Shown here one piece after another: positions 338-63,700 of a stretch of DNA of 64,000 nt (position 1 is its first letter; each line of letters begins with the position of its first letter). Below the pieces are notes generated by a model. The model saw only the letters and a program-made list of their open reading frames with translations, made no database searches and had not been told where the DNA came from. The position numbers and the translations under genes are program-made. This DNA is from Dimorphilus gyrociliatus (lineage: Eukaryota; Animalia; Annelida). Where the stretch lies: contig CAJFCJ010000002.1 of assembly GCA_904063045.1 (NCBI GenBank), forward strand, positions 4,149,891 to 4,213,890, read 5' to 3'.

Positions 338-1690
338 ATGGCTGAATGCGATTATGTCTGTACACTGGAAGATAAATATATTAAGAAAGCTAAGGATGAA
401 CTTAATGAAATACCCAGCGATAGATTATCAGCTGTTAAAGCTCTAAGGGAATGGGTTAATGAGCAGAAGCATCTTACATTCAACACAGGTTTGTACTTAT
501 TTTATCTTTCAAATGCTGCTAAATACTTTTTTTAATTTATGTTTATTAACAGACACGCTAAATTTGATTAGAATTTTGAGACACAGCAAGTTTAGTCAAG
601 CTAAAGCAAGAGAGACAATTGAGAATGTGGCAAAGTTTATTTCAAAGTCTAGAACCTATTTCTCCAACTTGGATGCCGAAGATGACAAATGTCAGTCAAT
701 GCTTAGACGAGGGTAACTTTTAATTATTGTTTTGCATTAAACATATCAAATATTGAAAATATATCTTTTTAAATAGTCAGCTTATGCTATTACCTGGATA
801 TGATGATGATGGAAGAAAAGTAATGCTATATAAACTAAGTATTCAAATTTTAAAGTAGATTTATCAGGCCAGCACTAACACTTTTTCCTACCTTACTTAG
901 ATATGATACCTTTCGACGAGTACAAGAGAGATTATAAGTTTTCCGTAATGGTAAAAGTCATGAATACTGTATTTATATCCCTGATGGACGATGAAATGTT
1001 TCAAGTCAATGGTGTTGTGATGTTTTTCGACATGACCGGCGTTACTTTGAAAATGATTTCAACATTTAATGACCCAGAGTCTATTAAATACCATAAAGAC
1101 AGTCAGGTATATACAGTATATACATTATATATAATACTTTTTTCTGTAATATTTTTTGGGACTACTAACAACAATGATTTATTATTTTACCTAGAACGCC
1201 CAAGTAGGTCGACTAAAAGGTTTTCATTACTACAATATTGGAGGTCTCTTTGAAGCTATGTTTTCCATGTACAAACCGTTCATGAAGCAGAAGCATAAGG
1301 AAAGGGTAAATTATCTTGAATATTTCTTGAAAGATGACTTCTATAATTTACAATTGGTCTCATATTTAATAGTTACGTGTACATGAAACACTGGAATCAA
1401 TTTATCGATACATTCCCAAGAGAATGCTGCCTAACGAATATTTACCGGATGACTATGACGGACCAAGAGCTGGATCTCTTGTAGAGATTGGAGGTAATGA
1501 ATACACTAGATCTCTTTACTTCGCAAAAGTCTCTAAGTTTAATTGTTTTTCAGCTCAAACAGCGGACGCAATACTTAAAAAGAGAGAGAAAATCCTAGAT
1601 TTTACTGATCCAAAGCACATATCCTATGATGAAAGTAAAAAACCATCAGCTGAACCCCTTCAACATTTTAGAAAACTCAATATTGATTAG
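338..1690 (+). CDS. CRAL-TRIO domain lipid-binding protein (alpha-tocopherol transfer protein/clavesin-like), tandem copy A, 315 aa
   Basis: 7 exons 338-488, 553-712, 777-838, 901-1106, 1195-1305, 1373-1493, 1554-1690, all GT-AG and phase-consistent (948 nt). Motifs: AKDELNE..., LIRILRHSKF (CRAL N-terminal), QVNGVVMFFDMTG, RLKGFHYYN, PKRMLPNEY and C-terminal FRKLNID, typical of the TTPA/clavesin family. Confidence 0.93.
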
Positions 1691-2197: not shown

Positions 2198-3510
2198 ATG
2201 GAGGACGACTATACGTGTTCGTTAGATGAGAAATCTATAAAAAAAGCTAAAGATGAGTTAAATGAAATACCTAGTGATAGATTGGCAGCTGTTCAAGCTT
2301 TAAGAGAATGGGTTAATGATCAAAAACATTTACGGATTGATACTAGTAGGATGTTAATATTAATACTCCATGATACTTTAAATAAATCCTTACCCTTTTT
2401 AGATACCGGTAATCTACTAAGGTTTCTAAGACATGCGAAATTTAGTCAAGCTAAAGCTAGAGAAACGATTGAAAATGTTTTAAAATTTTTTGGCAAAAAT
2501 TTACAGTTTATAGCAGACATTGATACTCACGACAAGAAATTACAAGAAGTATTGAAACTTGGGTAGGTTTGTCATAAACCTTTTCTTATATCACTACTTA
2601 TTTATCTATCTCTTGATCAGACAAATAGTCGTCTTACCAGGTTATGATGACGAAGGGAGAAGAATTATTCTCTACAGATTGAGTATGCATTTTACTTGAC
2701 TCTCTTTCAAGTTTCAATGTTTTATTTAACATATTTAATTTTAACCTTATAGCTGCTATCACACCCAGTGAAATAAAAAAAAAGTGGTCACCTGAGTTAC
2801 TCATTAGATCTTGGAATGCTACATTTTTATCAATGATGTCTGATGAAATATGTCAAGTTAACGGGATACTAATTTTTGCCGATATGACTGGCTTAAGCTT
2901 AAAATTAATTGCTGGACTGAGTGATCCTGTCATGATGAAGTATCATAAAGAGGCACAGGTGAGATTATTCGATGTTTGAATTTTTAGAATCTAAAAAACT
3001 TAGTATAAACTTTAAAACGCAGAATGCTCAAGTTGGAAGAATGAAGGGTTTTCATTACTACAATGTTGGTGGACTGTTTGAAGCTTTCTTCGCTCTATAC
3101 AAACCTTACATGAAACAGAAGCATAGAGAAAGAGTTAGTTTGTTTCCTTTTGACAGGAAAATATTTATTTCATGATTTTTACATAATCAGATCCGTGTCC
3201 ACGAGACTCTCGAGTCAGTTTATGAGGTAATTCCCAAGCGAATGCTACCTCTAGAATATTTACCCGACGATTACTCTGGTCCCAATGCTGGGACAATTGA
3301 AAAGATTATAGGTAAATGAAGAATTGGAATATACTGATGTTCATCAAATCTATAAACTTCTTTTCTTCAGATGATCAATTGAAAGTCTTAGTTTCAGAAA
3401 GAGATCAAATTCTTCAGAAAACGAATAGAAGAACCTTATTCTATGATGAAACTTTGAAACCTAAAACAGAAGAGCCTCTACAGCACTTTAGAAAATTAAA
3501 TGTTGACTAG
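2198..3510 (+). CDS. CRAL-TRIO domain lipid-binding protein, tandem copy B, 315 aa
   Basis: 7 exons 2198-2345, 2403-2562, 2621-2682, 2753-2958, 3023-3133, 3191-3311, 3371-3510 (948 nt). Internal exon sizes are identical to copy A. Motifs LLRFLRHAKF, QVNGILIFADMTG, FRKLNVD. Confidence 0.93.
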
Positions 3511-4442
3511 TCATTTCCTTCCATAGAAGTTACAACATATCTTGGATTTTCAGTAATTACTCTATCATTGTTACTACAATACTATAGAAAATATACATAT
3601 TTTTGCGATGCTTACTAAAAAAACAACTACTAAGGTTTTCAAAAGAAAAATAGAAATATGCTCTAATAGATCAAAACATCAATTTAGGACTTTGAACCGT
3701 GTATCACAGGTGTTAGATAAAGATATCATATTATTTACTATTGAAGTAATTTATGTATTCTCCAAACAATAGAATTTTGCTAATCTCTATCACTAGAAAA
3801 TTACAAATACAGAATTTTCAATCGCTTAATAATTAGACAAGAAGGAGAGAGACAGAAGGACAAAGGCGAAACTTTTTTTGAAGAAAAAAGTCTTGAGAAA
3901 CTTTTTTTTTTTTAATAAAAAAAAGATTTATAATAAATATGAATATAAAACTTATAAAACACTTTATTTTTATGTTTATAGTTTAAAAATAACGCAAAAA
4001 ATTCTTTTGATAAAATAATTAAATGTATTTCGTTTTATCACAAAAATTAAAAACTCTGTTAAGATATTTTCTAGAAAAAAAAAAGAAAAATCTATGAAAT
4101 GGATGAAGAAAATATTTACAATGAATTCTTTAAAATAAGAAGTTTTTGTCTTCGATATTGAAAAAAATTAATTGATTTAATTTTTGTTCATACTTTTTTC
4201 TTTTTTCGTTTCAGAGCTGTAAAAAAAAAAAGTCTTCTAAGCATCTTTAATTGAGGTCACTATTTAACTGCTAAAGGGGAAAAGATTGTAAGATAATCTA
4301 ATACTTAAATAATGGAATATAAAAAAAATAGCAAAAAAAACTGTCACAAGATAAAACAATGTAAAATTTTGGTAGTTTGAAGTTTTTGTAGAAAAAGAAT
4401 ATTTTTACAATTTACGCTTTAAAAACAGAGAGTTGAACACAG

Positions 4443-28218: not shown

Positions 28219-31200
28219 TTACCTATTGTTTGAAACATCTGTATATTTTCTGTGTTTTTCTTCACAAACAACTCTCGCTTCTTTTGAATAACAAGTGTCC
28301 GCATCTGAGTTTTGGCAGGAATTCTACAATTTAAGAGTATTATTAAATAGAAAGACATAATAATTATTTCCAATTTTAACTTACTTCCATACACTTCCAT
28401 ATATTGAATGCCAGTGTATATTCATCAAACTTCTGACACCATTTATTAAATTCATCCCTCCAAATACATTCGGCATCATTTGGATTACAATCTGAGTGAC
28501 AATGATAAAATAATTAATTCAAAGAGAAAAAATTAATTACTAGCACCCAGTAATTCATCTATTTGCTTTTTAAATCTTTGTTAAAAGCTGAATTTAAAAC
28601 CACTTTTACATACGACAAAACTAATTAATTCTTTTTTGTCTCTTTAATCTTGTCTTGAAATCAGGGACATTGTTTTATTCTTATAATTGTTTATAATTTT
28701 AAAGACTAAAAGATCGTTTCAAATACGGTATAGTTAAATAGCTTTGTAAACGATCATTTTATTAGGCATAACTTGATTGAGATATGAAAAAATTCCTATT
28801 TTAAGCATAAATGGTAAATTTTTTTTATAATAAGTTGTACTTGAGGCGACTTTCGTGAAAAGCTAAAAAAGAAAAAAGAGAATTTCCTCTCACCTGCAGT
28901 AATGACTTCCCAGATTGAGAGAACTATATTGAGATTCCCTGTTACACAAGTAAAAAGACCCTTTTCCGCAGAGGTCACATTCCAAACAATCAGAGAAAAT
29001 TCTTTATTAATTGTATATTTTTTATCGTTAAACGTTAGCTCTTCTCCATTCTTAAACCAGCGAACTTTATCGTCTACCACGTTGCAGTAGGATTCGCAGG
29101 ACATTAAAATATCTGTATTAGTTCCTCTAACATATTTTTTTCTACTAAGTATATCTTTATTCTCCTTTATGCATGCATTAGATGATAATTTAATAGCTTG
29201 AATACTTCTAGCTTTGGACAAATCTTTTTGCATCATTCCATTTGAACATTGTACGTGAACAGGGGCTGAAAGTGAGCCGCCAGGGTATTTACAAGTATTC
29301 TTTATCGAATCCCATGAGCAGTCAGGATCAGATAAACAACTTGTACAAGTGGAGTAGCTTGCACAAAGCTCTTTTAAACTTAATTTACCGACATGCGCGT
29401 CTGTGGTAAAATAAATTGAATTTCCGTGCAATTCAAAAGTGTTATAGAAATCTTCTTCAAGGGATGAGTCGAAGGGATAGATTTCGCTTATATCATCAAC
29501 AGAACCATTGACCTTTAGCGCAATTTTGGATATTCCTCTTGTATTTGTTGTTAGGTAAAAGATCTTTTCATCTCTATTTGAAGTTTCATCCACAGCAATA
29601 TGATTCCAGATTATACCGGGTTTGGATAAGGTAAAAGGTGTTTTAATCAGAGTATCATGCTTTATTGTTGTTTTTGACAAATATTTACGAACTCTTTCCT
29701 CATCGACAATGGATTTTGATGAAGGTCTACATATGCCTGGTTTGTAAGGAATATCTTTAGGAACAGAAGAAGGAATAAGAAAAGATAATGAATTCTCTGT
29801 TCTTTTTTCGTAAAATGTATCAACATTAAGGGCGTTGTTGATTTCAGATAAAGAGTAAGAGCAAACGCCAGTTTGTGAGGATTTCTTTCTATTAAACGAT
29901 TAATTAAGTGATTTAGAATTTTAGAATAAGTTGTAAATAATTTATTTTACCCATTGTTCTTAAAAATTCCATAAAATCTCTCACCATCTTCGCTTATTGT
30001 TAGTGCTATTAGTTTATTATAGATGACAGTTTGGTCCGGAGAGAATTTTTCATCGCTTTGACAAACTAGTTGTACTTTTACAAGACTTGACCATCCACCT
30101 AAACTGGAATCTTTCTGCAAATTATAAAATTCTATTATGTTAATCTATTCTAGAGAATTTCATGAATAGTAAAGTTTTTCTATGTTTTTTTGGTTTCTAT
30201 TTTACCTTACAAACTCGAGCAACACGAGCTACCAATTGACTTGGTTCGGATTTTGGTGGCGTATATTCTAATGCTAATTCATTAAAAAAATAGAGTAAAT
30301 AATCTTGGTCTTTAACTTCAACCATCTTTATTACTGTTGTATGACCTGAAGGAGAAAAACAATGTTGTTTTAAAGTCCGATAGATGGCGCCATTTGTCAA
30401 CATATGGTATCTCATTACTTACTGGAAGGCTGAAACAGATTTTCATTACCCACATTAGAGCCAAGCTTAGATATCCTTTCTTCAGTTACGTCAAACTGGT
30501 AACGCCAAAGACGGTTGTAAAATTTAAAAGCCTCAATCTCCAACATTCTACCAGCTACATATACAGCCGGCTGATTTTTTGGTGTCCCTTTATCGGTCAC
30601 CACCATTGATCTTGTAAACTTCCTCTCGGGAGTTTCAAGACAAAATATTTTACCACTTGGCAATTGCTTTCCTTGTGGAACTTCCTTAATTCTTAGATTT
30701 CTTTTCTGTATTAAAAAAATTGATAGTGATTAAATAGGTCTATAATGGAAAGCGACCAATTGATTAACTGCCATTTCTCCTACTCTTATTCCGCCCTCCC
30801 TTCTTATAGAATACAGTATTATTAACAGCAAACCAAGTTTTACTGCCTTTCTTTAATGCGTGTAGCTAATTTATATGTACATGACTCGAGTGAAAATACT
30901 ATAAACCTATATAGAATTTTCCTTATCGACCTCTTTATTACATGGTATAAGGTTTATAATTACAGCCTAATTATTACTTGATAACAAAGAATCATAGAAA
31001 TCTATATAAAAAATACATATATATATATATATATACTTTTTAATTATACTTACGTTCAATACAAACAGCTCTGGACTGGCGTAATTTGTTCCGCAAGTTA
31101 TTATTTCCTCTTCATAATCTACTTTATAACCGTCTCTGACTAATTTCTCCACCGGTGTGTCAATACCAACAAAATTTATAAAATTCTGGCCACATATTTC

Positions 31201-44064: not shown

Positions 44065-44499
44065 TTATTTGCCCGTTCTGGGAACTTTTGACTGAATATT
44101 ATCGCCTCGTTTAATTCCAAACAAAGATCTTCCAGTTCTTGGAATTTTGAAAAGTCTGTAACCAAATATATGCCTCTTTCCAGGTCTAGGAACCGTAAAA
44201 ATCGGATTGGTTCGCTTTGAAAGAGCATCATACCAATTTTCTTTTTCAGTATCAATTAGATCGTTCATAGCCGTTTCATAGTCGCTTAATTGAGCGGCAA
44301 AAGAAAATGCTGTGAAAATTAGTTAAATTAATTAACAAGTCAATAAATTCAATACTGAATTAATAAACTAGAAAGTGTTAATATAAACATTTACTAGAGA
44401 ATTAATACTATTATTCATTTATTCATTCAGGTTTCAATAATATTGTAGAAATGAAAAAGACTTACGTAAAATTGCCAACAATACCCAAGCTAACAGCAT
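44065..44499 (-). CDS. PRXamide neuropeptide precursor A (ETH/pleurin/NMU-like), 92 aa
   Basis: Exon 1 44499-44466 (MLLAWVLLAIL, donor C|GTAAGT) and exon 2 44309-44065. Sequence: MLLAWVLLAILPFSFA-AQLSDYETAMNDLIDTEKENWYDALS-KR-TNPIFTVPRPG-KR-HIFGYRLFKIPRTG-R-SLFGI-KR-GDNIQSKVPRTG-K*. It has a signal peptide, an acidic spacer and three Gly+basic amidation/cleavage sites. Confidence 0.88.
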
Positions 44500-44609
44500 C
44501 TTGCTGTATATTCCAGAAGAATAGAATTCAAAATGAACAAGATGAGTGTTATATACGAAAACTTAAATTCTATCCTATTGTGATAAACGACAGTGATTTG
44601 CTGTTGACG

Positions 44610-44630
44610 CACTTGGAATTAATTGTAGAA
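44610..44630 (-). promoter_or_regulatory. Conserved upstream module of precursor A (TTCTACAATTAATTCCAAGTG)
   Basis: 20/21 identical to 45447-45467. Lies 111 nt upstream of the A start codon. Contains a TAATT homeobox core and CAAGTG. Confidence 0.6.
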
Positions 44631-44886
44631 TGATGTTCAGAAGTAAGAATGAAAGAAAAATTATTCAACTGTGCATTTAGATTTTCTATTTTAGGATAAA
44701 TTAACTCTCTAAAGCTTTTGCAGTTACTTTACTGCAACGCAGTAAATCATTTAATTTCTTCATAAATTAATCTATATAAATACAGTCTTTTCTTTCTTTT
44801 ATACAATAGAGAAAATAAGACAAAACAATATATTTTTAATATTATCTTTGAAGCGATTTATTTTTAATTCAAACAGAAAAAAACTG

Positions 44887-45319
44887 TCACTTTCCTATCC
44901 TGGGAATTTTTGCTTGAATATTTGGATCATCCTCACGTTTGGTTACCATTAATGGATTCGTATGTTTCCTTTGAGTTTTAAGTCTAAAGTAATTCTTTTC
45001 ATCAGATACTAGATTACCAAACAGAAGAGATCTAGTGAATGAACGATTAAACAAAAGTAAGTATAGAATGAACAAAAAAAGTTCATATAAACTTACTGTA
45101 GAGAATTTCTTTCATTCACTACTTTTTGTATTGCCTGGAAAATTTTCTCTTCATCGCCATCCGGATAATAATTAAAATCATTATGAACATCAGCTATTTT
45201 AAATGTTAAGGACAAAGCTGCTTTAAAAACAAACTCAATTAACTTAACAATATCATACTATTAACTCTCTCGCTATTAGACTTACGTAAAATTGCTAGAC
45301 AGAACCAAATTCTCATCAT
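44887..45319 (-). CDS. PRXamide neuropeptide precursor B (tandem paralog), 100 aa
   Basis: Exons 45319-45286, 45220-45097, 45031-44887 (303 nt, phase-consistent). Sequence: MMRIWFCLAILPALS-LTFKIADVHNDFNYYPDGDEEKIFQAIQKVVNERNSLQSLLFGNLVSDEKNYFRLKTQRKHTNPLMVT-KR-EDDPNIQAKIPRIG-K*. Its 34-nt first exon ends GCAATTTTAC|GTAAGTC, exactly as in copy A. AATAAA lies at 44862-44857. Confidence 0.85.
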
Positions 45320-45446
45320 TTTGCCAGTTGTACGTTAAAATCAAAGAATAACTGATTAATTCCGTTTTCAGTTTTCTTATATATTATTGTTTTGGAAAAT
45401 AGTGATAAATAACCATAGTGATAAATAACAGTTATTTAGCGATTCT

Positions 45447-45467
45447 CACTTGGGATTAATTGTAGAA
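45447..45467 (-). promoter_or_regulatory. Conserved upstream module of precursor B (TTCTACAATTAATCCCAAGTG)
   Basis: Paralogous copy of 44610-44630, 128 nt upstream of the B start codon. The adjacent GTGATAAA..ACAGT.ATTT stretch is also shared. Confidence 0.6.
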
Positions 45468-47563
45468 CGTTGTTTGGTAAAGCTGTAAATTGCTTAATTC
45501 TATATTTAGTTGCTTTAGTTGCTTTTTACTTTCATTCAAAAAACCTAACTAAAAACTAATAAATTAGCTGTAAAAACTGTTCTCATATACACTTTACACT
45601 GTTTAAAAGGAAAGCATATGTGGTAAACTGTTATAAGTTATAAATGCCGTTTCATCAATGAATGGATACTAATAACAGCAAAATGTGAATGTTACTTTTA
45701 TGAAAAAGAAAAATCACTCTTTACAATCTGTTTATTTATCAAATAATTACATTTAGAGAATGGAGATTTATTGAAAATGTACTTGAACTTTTGAACCTAT
45801 TTAACCTCATAATTCTTTTTTCCTACTTGAAACATTTTACAATTACCTTGTCATTGTTAGGGAATTCTTGCCTTTCATGTATTATATATAGTATATAGAT
45901 ATTCATTCATTTATTTATTATTCTTGTTGTGATACGAGAAAAAAGTCCAACAATTCCTAATAGAAATTGTTTATTTGCAGAATATGACTATATGCATGGT
46001 GAAGTATTATTTTATGAAAATGTATAAAGTTTTTACGCAATATAACCGACTATTTAACTATTTTATAAGTAGATTTGATGAAAATTTCGTGTGATATCAT
46101 AGCTCAAATATTGTTGACAAAGCAACTTTTATGTTAACGGTTTAATGATTTCCATTAATTCTGAATAAACGCTTTAAACGTATTTTTAGCGAAGGTCGTT
46201 CCAAAATAGAGTCCGTTCTTTCCATTTCCCTCAATACAAATTCCTTAATTCAAAAGTACTATAACAGATGTTACTCTCTAAAGGAAAGAATTAAATGTTA
46301 CAATTTTTAAAGATTGATCTTTCCCTTTTTGCTATTATATGCCGTCTATTGATCGTATAGTATTTTTAGTTAATGCTTTTATAGCTATGCAATTATTTTT
46401 CCATTCATTCGTATATTCTATTATGAAAAGGAAAAAAATGACTATTATGTATTTAAAAAAGAAGAGAAATTAACCTAAAACTTTTTCGTTTTATCATTAA
46501 AAATTTCCGTCTTTGTTTCAATTTATTTTAGATGGGAAGAATTATTAAACTCTAATTAACTATTATAATAACATCCTTTAGAACTTTAATGAGCCCTCAG
46601 CTGGATGTAACATTTTAAATAACTACGAATAAAAACTTATTGAAAATCATAAACTGATTGACTTTTAATTATATATAATTGTTAATTAGAAAAAGTAAAT
46701 TGTAACAACTTATAAAGCTTATTTAAAAAGAATAAAGAACTTAATGAGGATTAAAAGCTATTTTGAAGGGTTAGAAACAAGATGATGATATATTAACCCT
46801 AATCCTGATTTAATAACTGGTTATACTAATTCTAAAACCTAGTATTGTATTTCTTATAAAGAATATATCATATTACTTTGTCTTTCTAATAAATAACTTT
46901 AACGTTTTAATAACGGCTTAATTATTTTATGAAGAATAAACACGTATTGCTTAAACAGTATTGTTTAATTGATCAGATTATTGATTATGATAAGCTTATA
47001 CAATACAATGATATTCCTTAGGGTATACATTTCTGAATAAAGTGACGTTTGTTCGAGGACAGTAGGGAATGAATGGGGAATATGTGCTGCTTATGTTCGA
47101 TTAAGAAAGAACAAATAGTGTTGTTAAAGTTGCATTTCGGCGAAGAATATACAATTGCATAGTAGACGCAGCGTTAAATTTATGCATCTTTTCTCCACGC
47201 AGAAGCGTCATTTATCAATTTGCTTTTCAATTGTTTACAAGAATAGAGAGTGGCCTCGTGTCTGCTATCTCTTAATGGCAATAAAACCTATTATCAGCAT
47301 CGCTAGATTAACTCTATAATGCTCATTAATCTCTATATTCACTTTCTCATCTTCACTAACGAGAAACAAAAAATAGGCTAAAAGAAATATTACGTTATCT
47401 GATGCTTTGTAAAAGAAGAATTTAACCAATGACGAGTGTCACCTGGTGAACGTCGCTATAGGAAAGCGCCCTCTGTATGATGAAATCATTAAAATAAGGA
47501 TAGGAAAGCGGTTGTTATATACTTTTTAGCATTTACGATAAATATCACTAAAAGTATTAATTT

Positions 47564-48642: not shown

Positions 48643-51600
48643 ATGGATACTAGCGACCCAGATGAGAACTTCGATTTGGAGCAACTTGAACAATCTCAAG
48701 ATTCGGAAGAAAGTCTTTCTGATAACTCTGGGAGTATACAATCAGTTGTACATGTAGGATCTTTCGAAAGTCCTCGTGTATCACCTTGTTGTAGTAATGG
48801 AAGCGACGTTGAGCGTCACATTTATGCTGAAGCGCGACATCCTGAAGATTCTTCCTCAGATGAATCGGAAGGGAAGAGACGCAACAGCGATTCATCATCT
48901 AGTTCGGAGAATACTCAAATGTAAAGAAATTTTTTACTTTTTCCTCTCTTTCTATCTTAATCAATCTAATAGGGATTGATCTAAGTGGTGAAAACTTTCG
49001 AAATCTGTCGATTAAGTTTACTTTTGACGCTAAAGTAAAACTTGTAGGATTGCTGAGATAATTAGTGTTCACGGACGCTACCTGTTGATCGATTCTACCC
49101 GGCGTCTTTTGTTCCGGTCCACAAAAACTGGAGCGATCAATTATGAAAACGTTTATTTGCTGTTGCAGTTTTAGCTGGTGGGCTTTGTTCCTGTTTTAGA
49201 TTTTGCTCTTATCTTTTCATTCTTCGTTCAAGCACCCATTCATATATGTATAACCCTCTCCGTAACATGTCCGCAGGCGTCTCTAAAAAGGCGTCTCTTT
49301 CTTTCCTTCTCCCTTTCTTCAAATATCAGCTTCCTAACAGCACTTTTATACTTATTTGCTCGAACACAAATATGAAAATGTTTTATACAACGCCTTCTTT
49401 TGATGCTGCGTGCGCTTGTGTAAGATGCACAGATTTTAACATGCGTCACACGCCCATATAAATTGGCGTTGGAATTTCATTCACAACAATTTCTTCAATG
49501 GTTAAATAATTATCTGTCACATTTTCTATCATAATTTTACTATGTTTTATTTTCATTATCCGTTTTATCCTAGTCAAAATATCCACCGCAAAGCATTTAA
49601 AAACATTCCGTATTTGCAGTGCTTTTTTCTTGACATTAGTCATGCTAATTCCGCACTATACGCGTGTTTTTTTGTGTATAATGGTGAAAATTTCCCTAGC
49701 TATCGCCACCGTACATACTCAATAAAATCTTTAGTAAGAATCTGATACGGCAATGGATTTATCGAACATTCCCTCATAATGCAGTATACCATTTTTTTGT
49801 ACTGCAAAATAATCCAGGTAGCTGGAATGTACCGTTCGTTATTTGCGAACTGAAATTAGTCATTGATGACAAATGAATGTTTTTAGATCTATTATTGTAT
49901 TTCACATCCTTGATAGGAGCGTGTAACAGATTTTCCATTAGGAATGGCTTAGTTAAGGCCTACTTAGCCATCAGACAAATCATCTTATTTAGAAAGTATA
50001 CAACTGTTACGAAGGACATTTTCGATTACGCAGTGAATTATATTTTATTGCTGTTTGTACTTTGCATGATTTGTTGTACGTTCAGTAAATTTGAGGTGGT
50101 AAGGCAGGAAATTATATAGAATACGTAATACCCTCAACAGTCTAGCCTATGCAATACTATATCCTAATTATATTACTAAAATGTGATAATATTTATTATT
50201 TGTTAAGCATTACGATAATTTTTTTGACCCTCACCAGAAAAGATATTCATTACGTATCCCTACCGCAATATCTACCGCAATTTTCACTCATTTATCACTC
50301 AGCCAGACATTTAGCGTCGGTCCGTAGAGACGGCGATCGACGCTCGCGCACGAGTTGCAAAAGGTCATTCGAATACGGATTAGACGCCGCATTGTTCGGA
50401 GCGACGCCGCGCGTGCGAATTTCTCCCTTTTTCTACTCTTTTATTTTCACCCCTGCGTTTCACACGCATCAACGCCTCTAATTTTGTCTGTGTGAAGGAC
50501 ATAAACCATTCTCTTTAGTAATTCTTTAACGATTAGTAATAACTAACTATCTTTTAATAATACTTTTATCTTCTTTCCCTTTCTCGAATCTCTATGTGTC
50601 CTTTATATGCAAATATTCACCACCGTATTTATGCTTTGCTTTAGGTTTATAGTAAAATAAATATATAGATATCTATATGTTTATATACAGTATATAGTTA
50701 TATATCAATAATGCTAATAAAGAAAGGAAAATTAACTACATTTTGAGGAAGGTTCTATATGATAGATTGAACAGTTTTTTCTTATTCTCCGTTATCTCTG
50801 AACAGTAGCTTAATACATGTACTTTGCATTTAACTTCTCTCTATATGTAGAGATAAACATGAGAACAATCTCTAGGATATTATTTCACATATTGCGTATA
50901 TACTCTTTTCTTTAGTATTTTTTGCAGTTGACTAATAATTCCTTTTGGAGCTTTTTCCTGCTCATATTGACATTAGGCAGTTAATCGCTATTGGAATTTA
51001 TTGATAGGTGATCGGGTGTGAGGAGCTTAGGCCTACGTGGCTTAAACGCAGACGGTAGAGAGTAAATCCTATAGAATATATGGGAACGCTTTTTTTAACG
51101 AAGCTTACGAGTTCCATTGTCGAAAAATTTTATGTAGAATCGAATTTTACGGTGTACATCTGTCGCTACTATTAATTACCATGTATTATTGGATATTTAT
51201 TGATTTTTACAGCTATTTTAGGGATAATAATATGGAGTATGACTTTCTCCATCTATTAATAGTAGCTAGTAACTTAAACACCATATATAAACTCTATGTA
51301 TTCTATGTAAATTATATACTATACATCTATAAATAGACATAGCGTATGAATACGATTAATTATCGTATTGTTTACAAAATATTATTTATCAATTTGATAA
51401 TTTGATCATTATAAATCATGTTGCTGATGAGAAATATAAGCTTTTTCTTCCTTATTTTTGCTCATTTGTTGAGGTTGAATATATTTGTTAAGAATGAATA
51501 AGCTCTCTATATAGACTCGAAGATTTATTCATGAATATGCAAATGTTTTTATAATAAATATTTATTATTATTACTATTTATCAACTCGAAATATGAACTT

Positions 51601-54600
51601 AGAGAGAAGAAAGAAAAAATTGCAATTAGTATTATTATGACCTTTATTGATTAGCATTAATAATTCTATTTGTACATTTAAATGACTTGAATAGTTGTTT
51701 TCCTCCCTTCTAAGCCTATTTTAATTTTAATTAAATCAAGAAAGGTCTAATAAATTCACTATGTATTTTATTAATGGAGTTATAATAAAAGTTGAATATT
51801 AGCTTTACACACTTGATTTGTACGAAAGAATGATAAAAGAAACACATTTTCGTATAAAATAGGAGAAAAATGTGTTTTATATATATATATATTTTTATAT
51901 GCATTTGTTATAATAAAAAAAAATGGTGAGAATTTTTATGGTTTACAATACGCTTATCTGGTTAATAAATCCACTTGAAATCAATAAAGAATTCTTTAAA
52001 GGTTTTAAGAACCTGCTTATTAATTTCACCTGAAATAATTACACTTATTATCGTCTAATTTCTATACATAATTCTGTACAAAAGAAAAAAGAAAGAAAAA
52101 AACCCAAGTGTCTATCTGTTTAGCTACTTTTAAGATTATTTTTTATTTGGGAAAAGACTTGCAACAGCAAAATACTGCAGTATTATCATGAAAGATATAA
52201 ACAATTGGATTTTCTAGCAAATACTTTTAGTAAAATATATATTTCTTTTTTATGTTTTGCAGTTGGATTTCTCAACAAAAGCAACTTCGATCTCACAACC
52301 AGTTAATGCAAAAATTTCAAAGGCATGCGTCTAATAACTTATCTACTAGCTCTGTTATGAGGAACAGCATGATATCATGCAATTCTAGCACAGGAAGAAT
52401 AGAAGTAACGCTGCACGAAGAACATGGAAATGGCGTCGATTCCGGTAAGTTTATTAATATAGTCGTAAATTATTTCACTTAGAATTTAACAAGTAATAGA
52501 CGCTTATCTTTTGTAAGAAATTAAGAATTATTAAAAAATAGGCCAAATGTATCTGGAAAAAAAATTGCGGGACAACAACTTACTAATTAATTACGCTTTA
52601 GAATCAAAGTTATAAAAGTTGCCTGGTAGGGTACTTTTTATGGATTTCGGTACAAATAAGAAAAACCATAAAAATGCTAGAAACGTAAAATTGCCATAAT
52701 ATCAAAGCCAAGCAGGTAACTCATATTGTTATTGTTTCATTTTTACGGTCATAAAGAGATTGCCTCTGCTCTAGAAAACGCCTAAATTAATATGTTCATT
52801 CGTCGAAAAACTACTATTGGAATCCTTATAAGTTCGAATTTTACTCGTAGAAAAGCTAAACTGTATTAAAATTCAAAACTCTCTCTTCGTTATAAACTTA
52901 GACCTAATTAGCGTACATATCAAATAAGTTCACTTGGCAAAGGAAATTCCCTTTGGAACGTCGATTCGACGCTTTTACAGTCTTTTTTGTAGAAGTAAAT
53001 GGAATTTTCTTCCTACTTTGATGCGTTTCTGTTAAGTATCATTTCATAGGTTTTTGACGGGCGTGGCTCTTCAAATTTATACTAATTTCTAATATATATC
53101 TTATTCATAGATTTTTTTCCACTCTTATCCCGATTCATCTAATTCAGTTTCTGATTAAAACTCAAACACGTAAGAGATCACGTGGAATAATACATATAAT
53201 TTATAGCTTTCTGACAAAAGTACACGCAATGAGCTCGTTTATGACTGCAAAAGTCTGTTTTTTTTCGCTTGTAGATGAGTTCCAATACTTTTGCGTAAGT
53301 GGCTTTTTTTAGTGCGATATTCAGGTAAAGATTACACGTCCTTAGTACTTTCACTAATGAAGGCCATAGTATAGATAATTTTTTAAATATTTTGGTCTTT
53401 CCAGACGGCTAAAAGGTTAAAAGCTTTTTAGGAACATCTATGGAAATTAATCTATTGATTCCTTAGCATCGAATTCTTTCTTTTGTATGCTAAGGTTCGA
53501 ATTACGAATTGTAAATATATTGTCCTTTATTGTATGACTAATATTTGATGAAAAAAAAACAATCAATGTACACTCTTCTTTGCAATCTGTGCGGATTGTT
53601 CTTGGACAAAGCATCTCTTATAGCTTACACGTACAAATTTCTGTACTAAGACATTGGAAAAGAGAGAACGTCTCGTAAAATTTTGTACATGAAATAGACC
53701 GTCTATTCAGAGTGTTTAATTATTAAGGAAAACCGGGAGAATTCCAAGGACATTAACAAAAGTGGTATCGGATTCGAAGAAAAAAGAAAGAAAATTTCAG
53801 ATGAATTTATGATGATTGCAGGTTCTGAAGGGGTATAAGCCTCTGGTAGACAGTTTCAACGAGCGTCTACATAATTTATGACACATATTAACTTTAGAGA
53901 GTAGAACATAAATGGGCAACGTTCCCTGATTTAAAAGAATTCCCTTGTGCTATTATGACATGAGTAAGAAACGAATGGGAGACGTACCTTGAAGAGACAA
54001 AAAAAAACATAAAAGACGCTAGTACAAGCTATATACATCATACAAAAATTAGAAAACGAATGATTTTCTTTTAATGAAAAGATTTAATTAGTAATCTATT
54101 ATTCATTATAAATTTCAATAGATAAATTCATCCTTCAACTTGTAAAATAACAAAAACAGGAAGTTCAAATCGTATTCAATTTTGCACTCGGAAATTGCAG
54201 TTCAGTAGAGAATATATAGCCACGTTTTGTAAACAATTTCAAGAACATCATCAAACTATTTGTACGCCGAAGAGCTCTGTCAAAATATATTTATACATTA
54301 ATTTTTGTATCAGAGAAGATGCTCAAGATAAAAGCCTTACAGAGATCAGTGCTATTAGTTTAGGAGACTTATTAAGACCTCTCGTATAGGCACGAATTGT
54401 CAACTAAAGTTAATTACGATCGTCAACAGGTGATGTGAAAATTTTAGATTATTAATGACGAAACTCTATATGCATCCCTCTAAGTTATCATTCTAGACAA
54501 TATATTTTCTCCTGTCAAAGAGTAAGGAAAAGTAATAAGCAAAATAAAGTTGAAGAGAATATCAAGGGGGTTTTAAGTGGGAGAGCAAAAAGACAAGACA

Positions 54601-57600: not shown

Positions 57601-60474
57601 AGGTGATCCCAGCCTCCTTCCAAATACCCAGATGCCACCTCCCAGTCCTCCCATGATGTCCATACTAAAGAATAACGAAGCTCAAAGTCAGTGTACTCAG
57701 AGTTGTGCAGTAATGGAGGCTCATTTACGGTAACATTTGTCTTAGTTCTACTCAATTTCTAAGTCAAATAAACTTAGTCTAATATTTTTGGCATCCCGCC
57801 AACTAATCGTTAATAGACGCTTTTATTAATTAGTTAGATTAAACGTCTCTAGCCTGTGTCTCTTATTTTTAACAGAAACAGCTTACTCAACGTTACCAGT
57901 GGTAGTTACGCCCTTTTCATTATTGTGCTTGGATTGGTTCTATCTCTAGCAGAAACGTCGGATTGGAATTCCCCAGGAAATTACGAGGTGGATAAACAAG
58001 GGGATTAAGGGTAGGGAGTGACTGGAAATTGCCCAGATAATCCTAGTAATTTAGTTTGAAAACACTATTTTTTCGCAAATTACCAAATATTCTTGGTACA
58101 ATGATATATTCATTATTCTTTGCTAAATTATTATTTGAAGTTATCTATTTGTTAAGGAATGTAAGATAATCGTAATTTCTCCAGTCCTCTCATCCATCTT
58201 ATCTCATTGGCGCATAAATAAATAAACACGATTATTCAATTCTTCTATAATTAACGCCTACCACCCGCAGGGATTCTACATTTTCCTTTATGTCGTCGCC
58301 ATCGTATTTCTTGGATACGCATTTGGCATCTTGCTGAGAGCTCGAGCCGAGAGGAAAAGACGCCGGAAGTGGGCACACGATGATGAGGCGACGCTCGATT
58401 CGGCATTACTCACCAAAGTAAAAAATGCGACTGTTGGTGGTGTTATCGTTCGAACGGGTAGCTTTTATTTACGGCTTGGTGCCGTTGGTAAGTAATATAT
58501 TTCAAAATAAAGTACAGATAAAGTACTAAGTAGACGTTTAACTTCCGTATCACCATTAGACGCCTAATGCTGTTGTAAACAGCTTTACGCCTAATTTCAT
58601 AGTTTGTATATAATGCGGGGGAAATAAACTCACACGTTTTGCGTTTAATAAACTGTAATCGATGAGAAATTTCCCACTTTTTCACATAAATAAACGTGCT
58701 GCATGCATAATAGAGACTGTAATCATAAATTCACCTTTATATAAATAAGCGGCACCGTATTTCGATTGAAGTAATTTTTTGTACAAAAAAAATATTTATA
58801 AATACATTTATATCTTAGGATTTGGTATTGGTGCTATGATCCACGAAGGCCTTAAATTTGGTGAAATGTTTCAAGTTGACGTTTTCTCTCCTTGTTTCAG
58901 GTAGTAAATTAGCTCCGAAAAGCTCATTAATTTAATGTTATTAATTATTATTATTATTTATAGTTCTGCTCAAGCCGTTAGTCCGATAATTCATCTAATA
59001 TTCATTTTTGCACAACTCTACTTCATATTCTTAAATTCAAAGGTAATATTTTATGATTTTTATTTTTTAAATTGTCCTGCCAATTTGGCTCATTAAGATA
59101 ATCTATGTGTCCTGTTTCAGATGTATTTACATAATTATACCACATTAGCAAGATTCGGTTTGATGCACATGATCGCGACAAACGTTTGCATTTGGATTCG
59201 TACGGTATCCAACCAAGTTTTAAGGGATTTCGACAAATTTCACGCTCATCTAGTTCGTAATCGTGACGCTTTCTATCTATTTTTGCCTTAGTTGTAAATG
59301 ATTTCATCGCTTTTTTTATATTACTATTCAATATCTAAACTCAAATCGAATTGTAATAAGAAATCATCTTTCAGAGAGAACAGTCCACAACCGATTCGAC
59401 AATTTTATTTTCGCCGACCAGCCAAAACTCAACTCGCTTCGCTGCTCATTCACTAGAAAATGGTAAATTTTAGACCTAAGAAATTACATACGATGTCATA
59501 GGCCTATAATTTTGCAGACACTAATCGTTCTACAACGGTAAATTGCACGCGTCATGACATAATCAGTCACGTCGTAGCCCGAGCAAGCCCATTTCTCTAT
59601 CCCTGCACAGTTCAATATTGCTTTATTGCCGGGGGTAAGGGTTTAAATTCTTCTAGTTCATTTAAATTATTCATGGTATTTTACTACTGTCCTTTAAACC
59701 CTCATATAATACCTAATTGCAGCAATTCTGATTGTACTGTGGAAGAATATCGGTAAACGCCTGGAAGTTACGAGACCGTCAACGCCATCTACTAGCTCCA
59801 GTCGTCGAATAGGAGTAGATTGTGGCGGAGCAACTCGAGGCCTATTTTTAGGGGTTTTAATTCTTGTTCTTACTATTATATCAACAATCGTTCACGTCGT
59901 AATGTCGGCCAAATCAGAATTTCAAAATATCGGAGATTGCTTATCCTACGGAACGGAAGTAGTACTACAAATTTTTTGCAGCTTAGCTATATGCTTTGCC
60001 TGGTTTAGAATGAGGGATATGAAGTTTGATCACAGATTGGACAATAGTTTGGATGAAGGTCTTCTTCTTGTTTCCCTATCTTTTGTATATATATTGTCAG
60101 TTTTTGGTATTGTTACCGGACAAGCGAGGTCATCTAGTCTCCTAGTGGCCTCCTCAACTCTCTCAGCCATAGAATCTTCCCTACAGACGGCTTTCATCTT
60201 TCATGCTCTGAGGCGGTCGTCCTTAAAACCTTATCACGAAACGAAAAAACCTGGAAGACAATACGTGACTTTTCTACTTATTGCAAACGTTGCTGCTTGC
60301 GTACTGTGCGGCGTTCAAGGCATAAGGACGTCGATAGAGAACACAGCGTTCGACCTATTACCGTCTATTATCGTTAGAAGGTGCTCCTTACCCTTCGTTA
60401 TCTTTTATCGATTACATTCCGCTATTTGTTTGGCGAATGTTTGGAAAAATGCTTACAAACTAAAAAGAGACTGA
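48643..60474 (+). CDS. Otop: Otopetrin family proton channel with long acidic/Ser-rich N-terminal extension
   Basis: Exons 48643-48920, 52263-52444, 57558-57729, 57876-57987, 58271-58487, 58819-58900, 58964-59042, 59121-59252, 59375-59462, 59518-59634, 59723-60474, with phases matching throughout. Motifs GSFYLRLGAVGFGIG, FGLMHMIATNVCIW, ASPFLYPC, WKNIG, VDCGGATRGLFLG, LQTAFI, KPGRQYVTFLLIAN, IFYRLHS. The core from 57876 onward is certain. Linkage of the first two exons rests on splice phase only. Confidence 0.9.
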
Positions 60475-60740: not shown

Positions 60741-63700
60741 TTAATCAATTTCAAGTGGAGGCCAATTAGTATCCATTTTTAGGTCTAATTCAATAGTTTT
60801 ATAAATATTCTTTTTGCCATGCTTTCGTCCACATTTCAAAAATCTCTTAATGCAGCAGCTAGTTATTAAAAACTCTTCTACAAAAAGTGCCATCAAAAAA
60901 TATATTCCTATTATTCCCATTAATGTTAATTTGAATGTCATTCCAGGGAGATTTGTTATCTAATTAATTAAAACTTATTATTAGCTTATAATATAATTTA
61001 ATATTTATAATATTCCGATTAACCTGAAGGAATTTTGCCAAAAACTTTGGAGGATATATTAATAAAAAAGTTGATAGACTAGTTAAGAGTATAAGTGCGA
61101 TAGTGAATGGAAGATTTGTCCAAATTGGTAGTCTATAAGGCCTCCCTTTGGAAAAGATAAACGCCAAAATTAAATATTGAAATGAAGTTGTTAAAAATAT
61201 CAATGAGGTTTCTGAGCAAGTTGTTACATTTGCAGAAGGGGAAGGCTTCACCCGGACGTACCTATAAAATTGCAGTTTTTAGATACATTATCTTCAAAAA
61301 CAACAAAACAAACCATGGCTGAGCTTGTAAGAAAAGTAAAACAGTTACTTGAAAAGCAATTACAAGTATAATATGAAGAAAAACGGAAAGGAGGTTAACA
61401 GATGAAAAGAGACTGCCAAGAGGCCTCTTCTGAACTAAAGCTCTATACGCTCCAGTGTGACCCACTGCGAAAAAAAGTATTTTATGAATTCTATTAAATA
61501 GATTTGTAATATAATTAAACTCACTTAGAATAGCAACAACCGTCGTAATTAATAGGTCGATGTAAAGAAATTGAAAATCTCCCATATTTGTACTGAACTA
61601 TTAAGAAAATAAGAAAAAATTCGTATCATTGACATTCGTAAATATTTCATTATCTTTCAAGTTAAAACTTACAGAGTATAATATGATAACCGATACAAAT
61701 TGCACAATACTATACAGGGCCATATATTTAAAAGTTCCAAACGACGTTACCAAAGCTGCTCTCCCCTCTCTTATTACAGTTGGGACACATTCGATATTAG
61801 GCGTTTTCGACGTAAAAGGAGCAGCAACAGATGCTTCTGCGTCTGATAATGATATTCCCGCATTTGCCATTTTTAGAGCAGAACAATCGTTTGCACCATC
61901 ACCACAAAATCCCACAGTATACCTACAGTATGCTTTATTCGTGATGAATACAATCTTTCTTTGGATAATTTAATACAAACCCTAAACTTTGAAAATTTTC
62001 TACTAGTTGACTCTTTTGCTCAGGTGACATTCTTGCGAAAACAGCTCCTCTAGTAATAATTCGAGATAACAATTCAGAATAATTTTCTCGTAATATTGCG
62101 TAAGTTTTCCCTGATAGGGCGAATAAATATTTTCTATCGGAACATTTTGCCTCTTCAAGATGGTAAAAAGGTTCCATATCTGATTCAAATATTGAACTAC
62201 CATCTTCGGACTCTTCGTTGCTTACGTTTTCGTGGAATTTATAAGTTAAATTTGGCGGATTTAATTGGCCATTTACAATAATAACTGGTCGTTTTCCCGG
62301 TGCGATACCACATTGTCTTGCAACACTTAAAGCTGTTAAAATATTATCACCTGAATAGGAAAATAACTTGTAAGTATTGAATAATAATTAAAATTCTATA
62401 TTTACCTGTAACCATAACAGTTTTAATATCAGCCTTATTAAGTTTTGTAATAACAGGTGTAGTTTGAGGCTTAAGTCTATTTTCCATTATTAATAGACCC
62501 AGAAACTTCATACCGTATTCCAATTTTTCCCTAGACATCTTTTGAACATGATGCCAAGTTACCTTTTTATCTAATGCTTTCCAAGCTATCGCTAGAACTC
62601 GAAAACCTTTCTTTGTATATTGTTGTAAACGTGCCTGGAAATCCTCGGGAACTAAAAAAAAATATTTCCTATTAGCAAGTCCACATTTTGATTTAAAAAA
62701 GAGTAGCGTTTCATTAAATCCTACCAGTTGCTGGATCACATAGAGAAGCGATTTTTTCCGGTGCTCCTTTACAATACAAGTCCATATGACTAGCTCGTAA
62801 AGTTCTTGTAACTACCGACATCCTCTGGAGAGATGACGAAAAGGCGAATTGTTTTATAATTCCAACTTCAAATGGTAGCTGAAGAAAGATTTAAAATGGC
62901 GATTCAATAATAATAAAAAATTGAATTTCTTTATTTGTTAAACTAATAACTGGTAGAAAAAGAAAGGATAAGTAGGTAAAGAACCACAACCACTTACATT
63001 AAAGTCTAGAAAATTAAATTCATTAAGGTTAAGGTGCGGCGAGTCAAGTCTCTGTAGAAAAATATACTATTATCGCTCGATAAACTTGGGACTTTTTAAT
63101 TGATACAATAGTCTATAAGCGCGAAGTAAATCAGACTATTCACTGAAACATAGCTAGTTTCGAGAAAATCATATTTTTCTGCGAACATACAGTTTTTAGC
63201 ACAACTAAGATGTAGCAAGCACGAAGCATCCAATGGTGAAATATTCCCAAAAGATTAATACTCCATTTTCTTATCTATAATACTTTGACTACTGCTGAAT
63301 AATAACAATACAAATGTAATAAAGGGAAAGTAAGCCTCTATAGGATTAGAAGATACATGATGTCACTGGACTATTACAAATATACAATATTCATATTGGA
63401 TTGAATAGCAATATAAATAGTATAGCATATAGATTAAATTCCCACAGAGTTCCACTAAAAATGCTAGCAAACAATTAGAAAAAATATTATATACTTTTGC
63501 TTGTGCTTCGTAATAAACATCACGAGATGTTGGCCTAACTACAGTTGGAGCAAGAGTTTCAAACTTTGATGAATCAGCTCCTGCTTCTTCAAGAACCTGT
63601 TGAAGCAATTTCGTTAACATCTTAAAAGCACAATACATAAAGTAAATATAAAATTACCCAATTAGTAGAATTAAACATGTTTAAATCAAGTGGATCTCCA

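Follow-up and report, generated by a model that had tools for sequence, protein, structure and literature searches.

A tandem pair of predicted PRX-amide prepropeptide genes in the annelid Dimorphilus gyrociliatus

Do two short, intron-split reading frames in the genome of Dimorphilus gyrociliatus, a meiofaunal, non-moulting annelid (PMC7854359), encode precursors of amidated signalling peptides, and to which of the known PRXamide systems, if any, might they belong? In the 64-kb stretch of DNA analysed here (the window), the two genes, A and B, occupy the minus strand in head-to-tail order, and the locus agrees with GenBank contig CAJFCJ010000002.1 in every letter. Their spliced frames are open and identical to GenBank models, A being DgyrCDS1864 (CAD5112649.1) and B DgyrCDS1865 (CAD5112650.1). 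A sequence-only reading of the window had found both genes, with the same model of A as in the annotation, and had supposed that they were likely missed by annotation. In fact the annotation had both; what was overlooked is their neuropeptide identity. Neither gene is in the published neuropeptide list for D. gyrociliatus, which holds two myomodulins (PLPRL/PLPRI-amides) and one sCAP and has no entry for ETH, pleurin or pyrokinin, and a literature search for the two accessions found no paper that names them.

Gene structure and predicted peptides

Gene A encodes 92 amino acids (aa) in two exons (44499-44466 and 44309-44065), and gene B 99 aa in three (45319-45286, 45217-45097 and 45031-44887). 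As had been claimed, each has a 34-nt coding exon 1 (44499-44466 and 45319-45286) with an identical 17-nt exon/donor sequence at its 3' end; intron 1 of both is a phase-1 GT-AG intron at codon 12, within the signal peptide. The extra intron described for B is also there, 65 nt long and of phase 2 (45096-45032), without counterpart in A and giving an immediate stop if retained. One junction probably needs correcting. It had been placed at 45286/45220, but acceptor 1 of B is a NAGNAG of which the annotation takes the second AG (CAG), so that in the annotated model exon 2 starts 3 nt downstream, at 45217, and the protein has 99 aa rather than the 100 aa (with a 65-nt intron 1) given by the acceptor AAG at 45220. 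With the annotated acceptor, a one-residue gap relative to A disappears. The introns of B, at 65-68 nt, are close to the genome median of 66 bp (PMC7854359).

An orthologue of A was found in a Logan contig from a second, diverged lineage (run SRR23372231, locus L001). The features of the pair, with what the second lineage adds, are these:

45410-45474, minus strand: B upstream block common with A; followed downstream by TATATA (45383) and the Inr-like TCAGTT (45355)
45286-45319, minus strand: B exon 1, signal peptide start
45218-45285, minus strand: B intron 1, 68 nt, phase 1, NAGNAG acceptor
45097-45217, minus strand: B exon 2, acidic spacer
45032-45096, minus strand: B intron 2, 65 nt, phase 2
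44887-45031, minus strand: B exon 3; carries the terminal peptide and HTNPLMVT (44964-44941), which is not amidated
44896-44934, minus strand: B predicted terminal peptide EDDPNIQAKIPRI-amide, between KR and GK-stop; paralogous to A peptide 3
44857-44862, minus strand: AATAAA, likely polyadenylation signal of B, 25 nt past the B stop
44571-44637, minus strand: A upstream block common with B; a TATA-like box just downstream, from 44555
44466-44499, minus strand: A exon 1, first 11 residues of the ~16-residue signal peptide; 91% identical in the second lineage
44310-44465, minus strand: A intron, 156 nt, phase 1, GT-AG; 106 nt and 48% identical in L001, both splice sites kept
44065-44309, minus strand: A exon 2, with the signal peptide end, acidic spacer, three predicted amidated peptides and stop
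44182-44211, minus strand: A predicted peptide 1, TNPIFTVPRP-amide, KR before and GKR after; invariant in the second lineage
44134-44172, minus strand: A predicted peptide 2, HIFGYRLFKIPRT-amide, with a GR monobasic site and Arg at -4; invariant in the second lineage
44113-44127, minus strand: A spacer pentapeptide SLFGI, non-amidated; invariant in the second lineage
44074-44106, minus strand: A predicted peptide 3, GDNIQSKVPRT-amide, followed by GK-stop; invariant in the second lineage

By sequence, residues 1-16 of both precursors have the hydrophobic core of a signal peptide. An acidic spacer of at least 27 residues separates it from the peptides, and a stop follows directly after the terminal peptide and its GK. 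All four Gly-extended peptides with their basic sites are present as the sequence-only reading had claimed, and each would end in P-R-X-amide: A has three (PRP, PRT and PRT ends) and B, as had also been noticed, just one (PRI end). Peptides with basic flanks and a Gly amide donor thus occur in both genes, and their selective conservation is seen for A. Across all six frames, the 64-kb window contains five PRxG[KR] motifs, and four of them sit in these two genes, within 830 bases.

Two statements about these ends have to be narrowed. Non-canonical ends had been ascribed to both copies; this is right for A (PRT/PRP) and wrong for B, whose PRI-amide is canonical, so that only A is non-canonical. 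Nor are Thr and Pro ends a novelty in themselves, as a mantophasmatodean periviscerokinin ends in FPRT-amide (PMC3272637), PRP-amide is known in hydrozoans (PMC8638164), and a brachiopod myomodulin precursor contains a PPPRT-G-K stretch. The HTNPLMVT of B, which had been taken for a remnant of the TNP peptide, does not rise above chance: the DNA match has p = 0.46, and the two 3-mers common to this region and A (P(>=1) = 0.29, P(>=2) = 0.06) are not colinear, the motif order differing from that in A.

Paralogy, selection and flanking sequence

A and B are old paralogues from a tandem duplication. Compared at full length through database records P0041 and P0042, they show 30% protein identity (BLASTP E = 5e-11); the DNA match between their terminal peptides exceeds all 1000 codon shuffles, and intron 1, the upstream block and the terminal peptide occur in both. 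A is under purifying selection. Between A and L001 the exons are 89-91% identical, and the intron is 48% identical and 50 nt shorter in L001; of the coding differences, 23 are synonymous and 6 non-synonymous (dN/dS 0.056; Fisher p = 5e-12). Over codons 44-92 the counts are 13 and 0, every amino-acid change falling in the acidic spacer, which as far as sequence can tell is the pattern of a propeptide with constrained mature peptides. As the peptides of A are kept in the second lineage, their Thr and Pro ends are neither sequencing errors nor recent decay. The claim of a duplicated PRXamide-type precursor pair in a non-moulting lophotrochozoan is supported.

The 65-nt block upstream of A and B scores 67, against a maximum of 49 among 2044 control windows, and its 21-nt core occurs within the window only at the two genes (0.02 expected). 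That it has been retained despite 30% protein identity suggests shared regulation, or overlapping expression, of the pair. In B, the TATATA lies 30 nt from the A of the Inr-like TCAGTT. The 220 nt upstream of A (44720-44500) are 92% identical in the second lineage, and its 3' flank (44064-43910) is 87% identical; no AATAAA or ATTAAA occurs within 300 nt past the A stop.

Logan runs SRR233722xx (L001, L004 and L005) carry a lineage of Dimorphilus that has moved far from the reference in sequence, with dS ~1.9 at a discoidin gene (L004) and ~0.5 at gene A (L001, another run); these Dimorphilus are probably one or more cryptic species. The discoidin-domain reading frame in the window is DgyrCDS1858 (100% identity). 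Window positions 350-479, 1370-1461, 2203-2358 and 3160-3303 give repeat matches to the same L004 stretches, which suggests a tandem array of related genes, and a reading frame at 2177-2566 resembles, as judged by eye, a CRAL-TRIO N-terminus. Upstream of the pair, two otopetrin-family genes lie close together (48643-54499 and 59902-60474, both plus strand), one annotated (736 aa) and the other seen as a reading frame. Elsewhere in the window are a semaphorin-like PSI+Ig exon (28796-29680, minus strand) and a P-type ATPase fragment (62347-62739, minus strand). The entry "DgyrG1864" in a published expression table was considered as evidence for A and set aside: DgyrCDS numbers count isoforms (1858 and 1859 are apparently isoforms of one gene), so this number need not denote the same gene.

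Searches for relatives and a candidate receptor

Each exon served as a separate query for homologues. Outside Dimorphilus, neither word-based nor exhaustive protein searches gave a homologue, except for one repeat-driven match, P0040. This four-repeat RPRP-amide precursor, the sole other phmmer match (E = 1.7e-7), resembles the X1PRX2-amide precursors of cnidarians and owes its score to the summed repeats of one short motif. Pfam gave nothing meaningful for A or B, two metagenome scans were empty, and motif searches of parts of the Platynereis and the nemertean/brachiopod/phoronid supplements yielded no matching precursor. In the ESM Atlas, structural matches of A and B were meaningless; the feature neighbours of both are mostly small neuropeptide precursors, without family consensus. 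Conotoxin-related DREP families were rejected because they are disulfide-bonded. Short precursors diverge fast, so blank searches do not show that orthologues are absent. Judged on the tests run here, the pair fits no named family. In ENA ERZ25072490 (L002), positions 3001-3771 encode a precursor of 256 aa that has a signal peptide and repeats the RPRP-amide unit four times, like cnidarian X1PRX2-amide precursors; a second repeat-rich reading frame lies at the start of L002.

We favour, at a probability of roughly 55%, the reading that A and B, as a prepropeptide pair from an old tandem duplication, give rise to secreted PRX-amides acting most plausibly through a neuromedin-U (NMU)/PRXamide-type G-protein-coupled receptor (GPCR). 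Convertase cleavage, trimming of basic residues and Gly amidation are established prohormone biology. Each gene would produce a small secreted precursor composed of signal peptide, acidic spacer and C-terminal peptides, from which the signal peptide would be removed after about residue 16. Prohormone convertases would then cut at KR, GKR and GR, a carboxypeptidase would trim the basic residues, and PAM would convert Gly to the amide, leaving three PRX-amides from A and one from B. We infer that release is most likely from neurons and that the target would be a GPCR of the rhodopsin-beta group, recognising the PRX-amide at the C-terminus.

The choice of receptor leans on spiralian relatives, in which the deorphanised PRXamide receptors are NMU-type (PMC7749107; bioRxiv 2026.07.28.741146). 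The slug NMU receptor has natural ligands from myomodulin-2/-3, loses activity when Ala replaces P, R or X, and is not activated by insect PRXamides (PMC7749107); PRXa-R1 of Aplysia answers to a wide range of PRXamide classes (bioRxiv 2026.07.28.741146). NMU/PRXamide receptors have the PRX-amide end as their pharmacophore, and these data make a receptor of that type the most likely target of A and B. Given the same slug results, with Ala at X and the insect PRXamides both inactive, peptides ending in Thr or Pro may depend on another receptor. The sequence-only reading had suggested that these residues might change receptor selectivity or make partial agonists; at the slug receptor, what stands at the last position does affect activity. 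Two further points tell against the favoured reading: PLPRL/PLPRI-amides from the worm's own myomodulins are already available to an NMU-type receptor, and no homologue outside Dimorphilus backs any family or receptor.

Rival readings and known PRXamide systems

That B is a decaying duplicate, leaving A alone functional, we consider very improbable. It has one amidated peptide, and no B orthologue was recovered from the second lineage; yet its frame is open across all three exons, with a protein 30% identical to that of A, and the annotation, typical intron sizes, intact TATA/Inr-like spacing, AATAAA and conserved upstream block speak for a working gene. The products might also be non-neural secreted peptides (gland, pheromone or antimicrobial) with a convergent PRX-amide end. 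Defence peptides, too, may be laid out as cationic amidated peptides behind an acidic propiece, and the family is apparently lineage-restricted, but the fully conserved peptide half of A and the repeated PRX-G motif fit receptor ligands better, and the ESM Atlas feature neighbours are neuropeptides; we think this unlikely. Somewhat less unlikely, though still doubtful, is derivation from a myomodulin gene whose LRM-amide repeats were lost, leaving only PRX-amides. Slug myomodulin-3, which encodes only PRX-amides (X = Y or G), and the PRX-amides of lophotrochozoan myomodulin precursors, among them the brachiopod one with PPPRT-G-K, speak for it. Against it, A and B have no P-L-P-R core and no LRM/LRL-amide repeats (absent also in slug myomodulin-3), no similarity was detected in the searches, and two true, separate myomodulin genes lie elsewhere in the D. 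gyrociliatus genome.

The sequence-only reading had placed the pair with ETH and pleurin, and here the doubt is about as great as for a myomodulin origin, or slightly greater. On this proposal, A and B form an annelid ETH/pleurin-type system that supplies the orphan lophotrochozoan ETH-receptor orthologue. Such receptors are present and orphan in lophotrochozoans (PMC8557429, PMC6660194), De Oliveira et al. found no ETH ligand outside panarthropods (PMC6660194), and ETH and pleurin are missing from the published D. gyrociliatus list. Pleurin was possibly lost in annelids (PMC8557429); Capitella and Alvinella pleurin-like sequences are cited in PMC8398477. In favour, the last five residues of Daphnia ETH1 (QKIPRI-amide) and of B (AKIPRI-amide) are equal, and multi-copy gastropod pleurins have, like A, three PRX-amides in the C-terminal half, one of them beginning GIF where A peptide 2 has HIF. 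However, K-[IV]-P-R, which had been given as the ETH signature, holds for Daphnia ETH1, and the other ETHs compared have K-x-[VI]-P-R. The ETH consensus is FFLKASK[NS]VPRI-amide (PMC9853942). Set by eye against FFLK-x-x-K-x-[VI]-P-R-[IML]-amide, A and B lack the FFLK head and have Lys at -5, not -6; they equally lack the pleurin 14-15-mer [FY][FY]T...[YF]-P-R-[IV]-amide. In the reference ETHs the peptides come right after the signal peptide and before a long C-terminal tail, whereas those of A and B are terminal, with no tail behind them. Their phase-1 intron is at codon 12, inside the signal peptide, unlike the single conserved phase-1 intron in the pleurin tail (PMC8557429), and exhaustive phmmer with A exon 2 matched no ETH or pleurin. 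The ETH/pleurin placement fails in precursor layout, in the position of the intron and in the N-terminal motif; what stands is the PRXamide type, and any tie to ETH, the hormone of insect moulting, is weak. That the annelid ETH-receptor orthologue, an orphan, has its endogenous ligands in the peptides of A and B, with PRT/PRP and PRI peptides differing in receptor preference, would seem similarly doubtful.

The pair enlarges the known neuropeptide complement of this miniature model annelid by two overlooked precursors, of which A is conserved, and shows that the published list has gaps. As candidates for tests on annelid PRXamide-type receptors, including the ETH-receptor orthologue, the four peptides are inexpensive. 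Were they to activate the latter, they would give ETH-type signalling its first ligand in an animal that does not moult and would bear on its role before moulting; if not, the pair would represent an ordinary lineage-specific PRXamide expansion.

Among known systems, ETHs share with A and B a hydrophobic-P-R-X-amide end, a nearby Lys, and Gly with basic processing sites, and differ in peptide position, in the FFLK head and from A in its T/P ends. Pleurins of molluscs, nemerteans and brachiopods are 14-15-mers with an F/Y-F/Y-T start and Y/F-P-R-I/V end, the single-copy type placing its peptide right after the signal peptide, unlike A and B. Insect CAPA-periviscerokinins and pyrokinins have the PRX-amide end, but A and B carry no F-P-R-V/I-, F-x-P-R-L- or WFGPRL- (tryptopyrokinin) amide. 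Cnidarian X1PRX2-amides (RPRP-amide, maturation-inducing hormones) end in PRP-amide, as does A peptide 1, but come from repetitive precursors unlike A and B, and there is no evidence of orthology. Compared with myomodulins, A and B lack the LRM-amide repeats and a P-x-P-R core and are much shorter precursors; the myomodulin-2/-3 peptides of Aplysia and the slug are, like theirs, spiralian PRX-amides with a variable X (Y, G or I; T in the brachiopod precursor), and slug myomodulin-3 provides the precedent for a precursor that encodes PRX-amides only.
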